A stretch of DNA of 64,000 nucleotides from Tubulanus polymorphus (taxonomy: Eukaryota; Animalia; Nemertea). The stretch's first letter is position 1; each line of letters starts with the position of its first letter. The stretch lies in assembly GCF_964204645.1 (NCBI RefSeq), contig NC_134032.1, positions 12,698,275 to 12,762,274 on the forward strand, written 5' to 3'. Below the pieces are notes generated by a model that was given only the letters and a program-made list of their open reading frames with translations, made no database searches and was not told the origin of the DNA. Both the position numbers and the translations under genes were made by a program. Positions 57,001 through 60,000 of this stretch are shown one piece after another.

Positions 57001-60000
57001 ATGTTTTACTGTGTGTTAATTGTTTTTTTGTTTGTTTTGTTTTTCAGTCGTCAGGCGGGTCACCGTATCGGTGAACATCTCGAGCGCATCGTGCCGTTAG
57101 TGATTAAATTCTGTAAAATCGAAGACGACGAACTGAGAGAGTTTTGTATCCAGGCGTTTGAATCGTTTATACGCCGCTGTCCGAAAGAGATATCGCCGCA
57201 CGTTTCAGCTGTACGTATCAGAAACGGGAATAGAAACCAATTGTTAACACTTTCAGTGCTGACTAATTAACACCCTATAGTGCTGGAGATAATTTGAAAA
57301 TTCTGAAAAATTCCACCCATGTGTGTTGAATAACAGGAATACCACTATAGTGCGACTACACCGCGGCGCAGTGTAATGTTAGTTACTAATATTTCACTAC
57401 GTTTGACAGGTGCTGCCATTTTTCAAGAGAGATAATTACTAATTACATCAATACACCGCAGTGCGGTGTACTAGCAAAATCTATCTCTGATTTATATACC
57501 GCATTGCGGTGTAGACGCACTGAAAGCGTTAAGAGTTTTAGTATATTGATATAGAATCCACACGAATGCTAAGGAATGAAAGCCCTTGTATTATTAAGCC
57601 CTTAGTATGATCCCGTGGGATAAGCATATCTGAAATTTTGCTTGCTCCCTCAAAAATCAACTTGCCCTACACAGCCAGTCCTACTCGACGTGGCACAATC
57701 CTCCGTTGTGATAATGATAACCTACTTGCCCTAATGAAAATATACTTGTCCCAAGCAATCGGACCAGTGCTTACATGATGTTAAACATGTGAAATTTTTC
57801 CTTTGAGCTAATGATGTATTGCAGGCAACATTTCTGCTATCATAGGCCTAATCTAAAACTGAAGGTAACTATCAGGTTACAGCCAAAGCCTGAATGAAAT
57901 AAGATAGCTCAAAGGAATTGATTTATCATCATTAGTGTGCAGGGGTTCCATACATGTATATTATCATCATAAGATATGGATATTTTAGTGTTTCATCAAT
58001 GGTTTATAATCATTACCTGGTTAGTTTGATCATCTCGCCCTATAGATAATCGAACTGTGTGAAGAGTATTTGTGCTACGATCCGAATTATAATTACGACG
58101 AAGAGGAAGATGAGGATGCGATGGATGTGAATGATGAGGAGGAAGAGGGGTAAGTGTTTGTGAGGAGTAAGAGGGAAATCATCGATGTGTTTTACGTGGT
58201 TCCCACTGTACCGGAAAATCGGGAAAACTTAGGGAATTTTAAAATGATATTTCCCGGTTTTTAGATATTGCAGAATTCTGATTGATTTCCTCTGATGGCG
58301 GAAATATTTTTGAAAATCATTTTATACTTCGTGTAGCTTAGTTGTGGGATATCAGTTGCTTGCTGAACCGCGACTTCTGTCGCAATCTTTTATGAAAATA
58401 ACCTTTGTCAACTACAGGATGGCATCTGTTTCTAGTTGGAAAACAATCCATGAGGTCCTCGGGAAATACTTAGGAAATTTTGAATTAATCATGGTAATAT
58501 TTGTGTTTGTGGGGGAGGGGAGTGGAGGGGGTTTGTGTTTGGAGGGGAGTGGATGGGGTGTAGAGGGGAGTCACTGATCTATTGTTTATGTTTGTCTAGT
58601 GAGAGTGATGGGGAGAGGTGAGGGGAGTGCAGGGGGTGTGGAGGGGAGTCACTCACTGATCTGTTGTTTATGTTAGTCTAGTAGTGAAAGTGATGACGAG
58701 AGGTGAGGGGAGTAGAGGGGAGTCACTCACCGATCTGTTGTTTATGTTAGTCTAGTAGTGAAAGTGATGACGAGAGGTGAGGGGGTGTGGAGGGGAGTCA
58801 CTCACTGATCTGTTGTTTATGTTAGTCTAGTAGTGAAAGTGATGACGAGAGGTGAGGGGGTGTGGAGGGGAGTCACTCACTGATCTGTTGTTTATGTTAG
58901 TCTAGTAGTGAAAGTGATGACGAGAGGTGAGGGGGTGTGGAGGGGAGTCACTCACCGATCTGTTGTTTATGTTTGTCTAGTGAGAGTGATGATGAATACA
59001 GCGACGATGATGATATGAGTTGGAAAGTTCGTCGCGCGTCTGCGAAATGTCTCGACGCGATCATCGCCACGCGACACGAGATGCTCGTCGAATTCTACAA
59101 GATCATCTCTCCCACTCTTATCAGTCGATTTAAAGGTAAACTATTCTAAAATTGAAATTAGTTTCTGTCCAAATACTGAAGTTCTTATTTACTCTTGGAA
59201 CTGTTTAGAACAGTCTACTGGCCTGCAATTGAAAGAGATTTTAACATACAGTAAACCCCCGATATACCACCCTCCCATATACCGCCACCCCCCGCTTACT
59301 GCCAAATTTTCTCATTGTACATCTCTATACAAATACCTAGTAAAACACCCCCAATATGCCGCTATACTCTCGATACGGGATCTAGATTTCTCCAAAATTG
59401 TTCTGCACCGATGTGGGGGGTATATCGGGGGTTGACTGTGTCATAAATTTTTGCTGTCTGAATTATCTACATAAAGGGTCTTAAGATTCGAACATACTTA
59501 CTGTAAGTAAGTAATACAGACTTAGAAATTCTTTAACTGGGCCTCAACATTATATGTATATATTTTGTAGAGAGGGAGGAGAATGTAAAAGCCGATATAT
59601 TCCATGTTTATATAACGTTACTGAGGCAGACGAAACCGAGCGTACTCACTGAACCCGACGCTATGGAAGAGGACACCGGGTAAGTAGTACTGATTTCACT
59701 TAAAGATTATCATCCACCAAAAATGATCTTGAAATTCCAAATTTTCCTAAAGTGATATATGCTGTATCAAAACTCTTTGATCCTAGAGATGAAATATGAA
59801 ACCAAGGAACAAAATTTGCTACTTCTTTTTAAGTTCATTAATCATTTGATTAGTCTTGATTTTCTTTGACATTTTGATCAACTTCTTGAGTACATACCGT
59901 AACTAATTGAGGTCTTACCCTGAGTAAGTCTGAGATATCTGAGATATGGTCTGAACCCATGTTCTGCACCCGTTGCCAGCGAGTCAAGTTGAATCTGAGA

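Follow-up and report, generated by a model that had tools for sequence, protein, structure and literature searches.

Tandem duplication of DNA that carries splice signals reportedly gives rise to new potential introns and exons, as set out in Rogers' model and as is said of Drosophila and of potato RdRp. Regulated animal microexons show conservation between species, and they rely on intronic enhancers as well as on strong signals at their flanks. Among described repeats, 'mirage' minisatellites were reported in the amphioxus gene Adh3 and in the globin genes BflGb6 and BflGb9, where the repeat unit spans an exon-intron boundary (PMC3087553), and the turning of a mirage unit into a new exon has already been proposed for amphioxus (PMC3087553). 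In the human F7 gene, a 37-bp repeat in intron 7 contains identical pseudo donor sites that are normally silent (PMC1557585). Splicing at these published junction arrays proceeds normally despite the extra sites (PMC3087553, PMC1557585).

The array that we describe here lies in CAND1 of the nemertean Tubulanus polymorphus, within the 64,000-nucleotide stretch that was analyzed (the window; coordinates count from its first nucleotide, and all features given below are on the + strand). Exons were mapped by tblastn with a full-length CAND1-like protein followed by splice-site refinement, which gave a single-copy gene of 28 small exons running from 54027 to about 68730, so that CAND1 extends 4.7 kb beyond the 3′ limit of the window. 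When the exons of this model were concatenated by script and the length and stops were counted, no internal stop was present; homology searches were made exon by exon. An earlier sequence-only reading of the same DNA had numbered the exons concerned as 8 and 9 and had put the shortest intron at about 73 nt. Both statements fit the 28-exon model, in which the 27 introns range from 73 to 835 nt.

Exon 8 (58046–58149) encodes 34 residues plus (G) and ends in phase 2 (..GAG GAA GAG GG). It is followed by intron 8 (58150–58980; 831 nt, GTAAGT...TAG), which is rich in G over its 3′ 480 nt (41%, with 9% C), and by the true exon 9 (58981–59135; 155 nt), which encodes (G) plus 51 residues and is also the last, partial copy of the repeat. 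Exon 9 matches residues 335–384 of human CAND1 (PDB 1U6G) with an E value of 8.5e-26 and differs from it at 6 of 50 residues. The exon 9 acceptor has an unbroken tract, tgtttgtctag, and scores 5.7 bits, and the exon 9 donor, AAG/gtaaac (the slash marks the splice boundary here and below), scores 6.5 bits. The non-repetitive first half of intron 8 holds, within 58250–58275, an acceptor-like site of its own, tttcccggtttttag/ATA, which at 10.4 bits beats most real CAND1 acceptors.

The sequence-only reading had reported a 75-bp minisatellite in intron 8 of CAND1, and we recovered it with the acceptors, segments, spacers and frames that had been assigned to it. Tandem Repeats Finder gave a period of 75, 4.7 copies, 96% matches, no indels and a score of 660 over 58631–58981. 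This is the homogenized part of the array, in which each unit consists of a G-rich spacer, then cactcac(t/c)gatctgttgtttatgttagtctag, then TAGTGAAAGTGATGACGAGAG. A repeat-family search found five in-register copies from 58558, at spacings of 75, 74, 75 and 75. This array was found nowhere else in the 268-Mb assembly (77 contigs), intron 8 being the sole locus, and the unit had 0 matches in the metagenome contig collection. The copy numbers given here come from a single haplotype.

The oldest and most diverged copy, U1 (58558–58632), has 63% identity to the reference copy. It has retained the ancestral tract tgtttgtctag and contains an 18-nt pseudo-exon at 58600–58617 (TGAGAGTGATGGGGAGAG, ESDGES) followed by gtgagg, with scores of 4.7 bits for the acceptor and 3.8 bits for the donor. 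The pseudo-exon of U2 (58682–58702) is 21 nt long, or 18 nt when counted from the second TAG, is in frame, encodes SESDDES and is likewise followed by gtgagg; those of U3 (58756–58776), U4 (58831–58851) and U5 (58906–58926) are also 21 nt long and are the same as that of U2. Joined to the GG that ends exon 8, the pseudo-exons read GESDGES or GSESDDES, stop-free and phase 2 to phase 2, just as the earlier reading had it. Six TCTAG/T acceptors are present, at 58595, 58677, 58751, 58826, 58901 and 58976, and the sixth (58976–58980) is the true exon 9 acceptor, which bears out the earlier count of five decoys ahead of the real one. The spacers measure 64, 53, 54, 54 and 54 nt, so that only 54 nt lie between the donor-like GT of U5 and the true acceptor.

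Assemblies tend to collapse or expand tandem repeats, and a copy-number difference between two contigs of another animal, described below, may be an effect of this kind. That the present array or its copy number has been mis-assembled is nevertheless extremely improbable, as the array spans no more than about 435 bp, lies within a 16.7-Mb contig without N, and shows ordered differences between copies together with an older, diverged copy at its 5′ edge, as real minisatellites do.

Alignment of the six acceptors showed that every unit duplicates the intron 8/exon 9 boundary, in keeping with the origin by tandem duplication of an intron/exon boundary that had been put forward for the array. The intron part common to the units is cactcac(t/c)gatctgttgtttatgtt(t/a)gtctag. 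The units carry ...ctgttgtttatgtt(a/t)gtctag followed by T(AGT)GA(A/G)AGTGATGA, which corresponds to the end of intron 8 and the start of exon 9 (TGAGAGTGATGATGAA), and the copied exon piece continues into GAGAGGTGAGGGG, part of a G-rich 10–12-nt motif. The first 11–15 nt of each pseudo-exon are a copy of the exon 9 start. Because the unit copies a real junction, its branch-like motif, T-rich tract, TAG, frame and Glu/Ser/Asp codons are inherited; all that is new in the units is the donor-like AG/GTGAGG and a pseudo-exon length that is a multiple of 3, for which the a priori expectation is 1 in 3. The tandem repeat itself is certainly beyond chance, and the alignment indicates that the acidic, stop-free reading of its units is largely inherited from exon 9.

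The array lies inside the intron and adjoins exon 9, and its last copy is the authentic junction itself. The tract of the four internal units is tgttagtctag, and they have two silent changes and an insertion of 3 nt in common. U1 and the true junction keep tgtttgtctag; homogenized inner units flanked by older edge units are the usual picture of a minisatellite. The T-to-A change of the four internal units (58672–58677 in the first) creates, within the pyrimidine tract and besides an extra AG, a GTTAGT hexamer that scores 4.6 bits as a donor.

Upstream of the array, a G-rich stretch (58500–58570) is made up of 10–12-nt motifs, GAGGGGAGTR / GGGGGTKTG, which were detected by Tandem Repeats Finder at small periods (5–12) and as repeat families D2 and D3. 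The motif recurs inside each unit, where it supplies the GGTGAGGGG that forms the donor-like site. Within this stretch, on the transcribed strand, 58511–58550 has at least four runs of G4-5 with short loops between them (GGGGGAGGGGAGTGGAGGGGG...GGAGGGG), from which a G-quadruplex could form; every decoy donor also has this G-rich motif directly 3′ of it.

From these features we propose that the terminal ~32 nt of intron 8, the initial 11–15 nt of exon 9 and an upstream G-rich piece were duplicated in tandem, the duplication point probably being a short GAGTG(G)ATG homology. Amplification and homogenization by unequal exchange would then have produced about five copies, and the AG/GTGAGG donor would have been formed where the exon piece was joined with the G-rich motif.

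The sequence-only reading had further suggested that the array acts as a generator of microexons that tunes the length of an acidic loop in CAND1. To assess the splice signals of the copies, we derived position-weight matrices from CAND1 only, with the donors and acceptors of its 27 real introns, and the true intron 8 acceptor was excluded from the matrix when its copies were scored. The decoy acceptors scored 4.7–5.0 bits, compared with 5.7 bits for the true acceptor, a gene median of 7.9 and a range of -2.5 to 14.7 for real sites. On these scores the decoy acceptors appear to be credible competitors, nearly equal to the true one. The decoy donors, GAG/gtgagg, scored 3.8 bits, under all 27 real donors (4.5–10.8, median 8.2; 27-site matrix), and 7% of the GT dinucleotides in CAND1 introns score as high as the decoy donor or higher.

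In the four internal units, the T-to-A change places another AG 5 nt upstream of the decoy acceptor, with a score of 6.9 bits in three of the four and 4.1 bits in the remaining one. This AG is the first past the branch-like motifs, and its use yields a frame-shifting piece of 26 nt, starting at 58677 in U2, 58751 in U3, 58826 in U4 and 58901 in U5. A decoy acceptor used without its donor reads, from the sequence, ..GAG AGG TGA, which is a stop.

The spacing of the units bears on their use as well. All spacers (53–64 nt) are shorter than every CAND1 intron. A transcript could plausibly include no more than one unit, and inclusion of the last unit would leave an intron of 54 nt. The earlier suggestion that adjacent copies may be mutually exclusive is upheld, provided that the shortest intron of 73 nt is a guide. 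An unsupervised scan of 268 kb for donors and acceptors with an open frame between them proved too noisy to set a genome-wide minimum for intron length; at moderate thresholds it showed an excess over the control only at 70–100 nt and none at 50–69 nt.

Regulated microexons of animals are marked by an upstream TGC motif, and a check of the sequence found no such motif within 40 nt upstream of the decoy AGs. We also considered a GGUGAG-CUCAC(C) hairpin that would hide the decoy donor; this pairing appears in the predicted folds, which had z values of -0.4 to -1.0, no better than shuffled sequences.

Transcript-derived CAND1 protein of this species was sought in several ways. A word search with exon 9 found none among proteins of 28–89 aa. 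A homologue of 147 aa covering exons 7–9 (P0085), used as the query, found none among proteins of 81–257 aa, for the best 120 of 418 matches, and a query of 735 aa (P0130) found none among proteins of 404–1286 aa, the matches listed being sauropsid paralogues. The large representative search yielded no CAND1 protein from the same species, and no protein returned by the exon 9 query, the P0085 query or the large search was more than 93% identical to the exons of the window. The genome itself holds no CAND1 retrocopy that could record the spliced junction.

Some of these data point away from silent copies: the decoy acceptors are nearly equal to the true one, AG/GTGAG is a credible donor core, and the piece between them is stop-free and preserves the frame. 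One rival reading is that of working alternative microexons, with one unit of 18 or 21 nt spliced between exons 8 and 9 to add SESDDES and its three CK2-type serines, a reading that we regard as very unlikely. In its favor, every piece is complete, keeps the frame and comes with AG/GTGAG, a branch-like motif and an acceptor; the differences from exon 9 are silent only; and the loop of 22 residues would grow to 29 with one insertion, which is within the range of 19–30 residues seen in 157 distinct homologue loops. In one exchange intermediate, the CUL1 'claw' grips an acidic CAND1 loop that is largely disordered (PMC10156175), and we infer that this is the loop at the exon 8/exon 9 junction. 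If the units were indeed used, the copy number of the repeat would vary the frequency of insertion into this disordered acidic loop, which we hold to be equally doubtful.

What speaks against working microexons is that the decoy donors score under every real CAND1 donor, that a frame-shifting AG competes in the four internal units, that the sequence runs into TGA when the donor is not used, that the TGC motif is missing from the 40 nt upstream of the decoy AGs, and that skipping is the expected fate of a 21-nt exon that shows no sign of an enhancer. In addition, a parallel array in another animal, described below, does not preserve the frame, and published arrays of like kind are silent and normally spliced. 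Taken together, these points leave the proposed microexon generator unsupported, while the other parts of the earlier interpretation, namely the minisatellite, its decoys and their origin by duplication, hold.

The reading frame of the units offers a further, weak hint. In the codons that they share, the internal units and exon 9 differ by GAG versus GAA, GAT versus GAC and GAA versus GAG and by a 3-nt insertion, all of which are silent or in frame. Differences of this kind hint weakly at coding constraint, with an estimated chance of about 0.06–0.16 if some of them arose in the real exon; the hint is weak because the changes may have arisen in that exon, which is itself constrained. Since the internal units are identical, they give no conservation signal for microexons. 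Selection on the pseudo-exons was considered as a line of evidence and rejected, as there is no difference among the four internal copies, too few sites vary and the silent differences may date from the real exon.

We see a small chance that an exon or intron is being born at this locus, with one decoy included appreciably but neutrally, as the opening step in the model that derives a new exon from a mirage unit. For amphioxus globins this model is in print (PMC3087553, Figure 7); in CAND1, the unit preserves the frame and is already equipped with both splice signals, and the loop tolerates changes in length. However, all the points raised against working microexons apply here too, and the likeliest forms of mis-splicing, through the upstream AG or without use of the donor, would give frame-shifted or stop-containing RNA.

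In the large representative search, junction repeats at the same CAND1 exon were found in two further animals, both from environmental assemblies. In the first animal, an acceptor-side unit of 57 bp occupies the same boundary, with three decoys on one contig (L005:966–1184) and two on another (L006:366–500), the contigs coming from two ENA metagenome assemblies. The unit reads ttgttcag/G GAG TCT GAC GAC GAG TGC AGT GAC GAT GAT GAC/gtgagt... and consists of an exon piece of 34 nt and a spacer of 23 nt. With these lengths the array can neither keep the frame nor splice unit to unit, and it follows that at least one such array cannot be a microexon device. In every decoy of this animal, the ATGAGC (Met-Ser) of the exon has become GTGAGT, a consensus donor, by two transitions; these changes also bring the stretch closer to the neighboring GT-rich repeat, and the donor may be a by-product. 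The end of the second contig (L006:1–42) is tcgtcggcagcgtcagatgtgtataagagacag, which we take to be a Nextera/transposase sequencing adapter, and this contig was probably not adapter-trimmed.

The second animal has a donor-side array (L014:1750–2000), in which the final ~43 nt of the exon, together with the donor (..GCAAGGTTCAAGG/gtaaatga), occur in tandem at least five times; its sister contigs P0319 and P0321 have one copy. Junction repeats at this CAND1 exon are therefore recurrent and independent. Several Logan-derived CAND1 fragments of other animals (P0239, P0240, P0241 and P0264) have 20–35 non-acidic residues exactly between ..YQG and GSDD, and from their sequences these inserts look like a retained or read-through intron at the conserved junction.

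Considering all of the above, we conclude that the array is probably an ordinary intronic splice-junction ('mirage') minisatellite, the decoys of which are silent or used at trace level. The spliceosome would join exon 8 to the last copy, and the last acceptor would be chosen because it alone leads into a purine-rich exon of the full 155 nt that has a real donor. The decoys lie 53–64 nt apart and are followed, after 21 nt, by a donor below the range of real sites and by G-runs, and they would be used at trace level if at all. Use of a decoy, when it happens, would mostly give out-of-frame or stop-containing RNA.

As one more instance of a described repeat type, the array is of little consequence by itself. 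With complete in-frame pseudo-exons in front of a highly conserved exon, it is a natural setting in which one could test cleanly how a spliceosome singles out the last of six near-identical acceptors, and likewise the published model in which a mirage unit becomes an exon. The independent repeats at the CAND1 exon suggest that such repeats are common in the genomes of marine invertebrates, and gene annotators should expect them. We give little credence to the view that the copies are individually included and that a repeat of variable copy number sets how often 6–7 acidic CK2-type residues join the CUL1-gripped loop. If true, it would represent a protein feature tuned by a minisatellite as well as live exon birth from a junction repeat, and real inclusion would change an acidic CAND1 loop with a probable part in SCF substrate-receptor exchange.

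Compared with regulated animal microexons (3–27 nt), the CAND1 copies are alike in their length of 18–21 nt, in preserving the frame and in that they would insert into a surface or disordered loop, but they differ in being young and species-specific, with a weak donor and no such enhancer motif. In the Drosophila and potato RdRp cases the new intron was reportedly shown to be spliced, whereas the new signals of the CAND1 array are putative. In F7, the duplicated sites are donors that lie downstream of the authentic one, and the winner is the site furthest upstream; in CAND1, the extra acceptors lie upstream of the authentic one, and the acceptor furthest downstream must be the one to win. Moreover, the F7 units lack a complete pseudo-exon, unlike the units in CAND1.

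The likeness to amphioxus is closer. The BflGb6 unit is also made up of the 3′ end of an intron together with the next exon's 5′ part (PMC3087553), and the amphioxus mirage repeats share with the CAND1 array many units with AG/GT, concerted evolution and edge copies that lie outside homogenization (PMC3087553). The amphioxus genes were studied by RT-PCR and the CAND1 array by its sequence. The present array differs further in its host, a nemertean, in its gene, CAND1, and in its unit of 75 bp versus 150–160 bp in BflGb6, and every one of its units is a complete pseudo-exon that preserves the frame.
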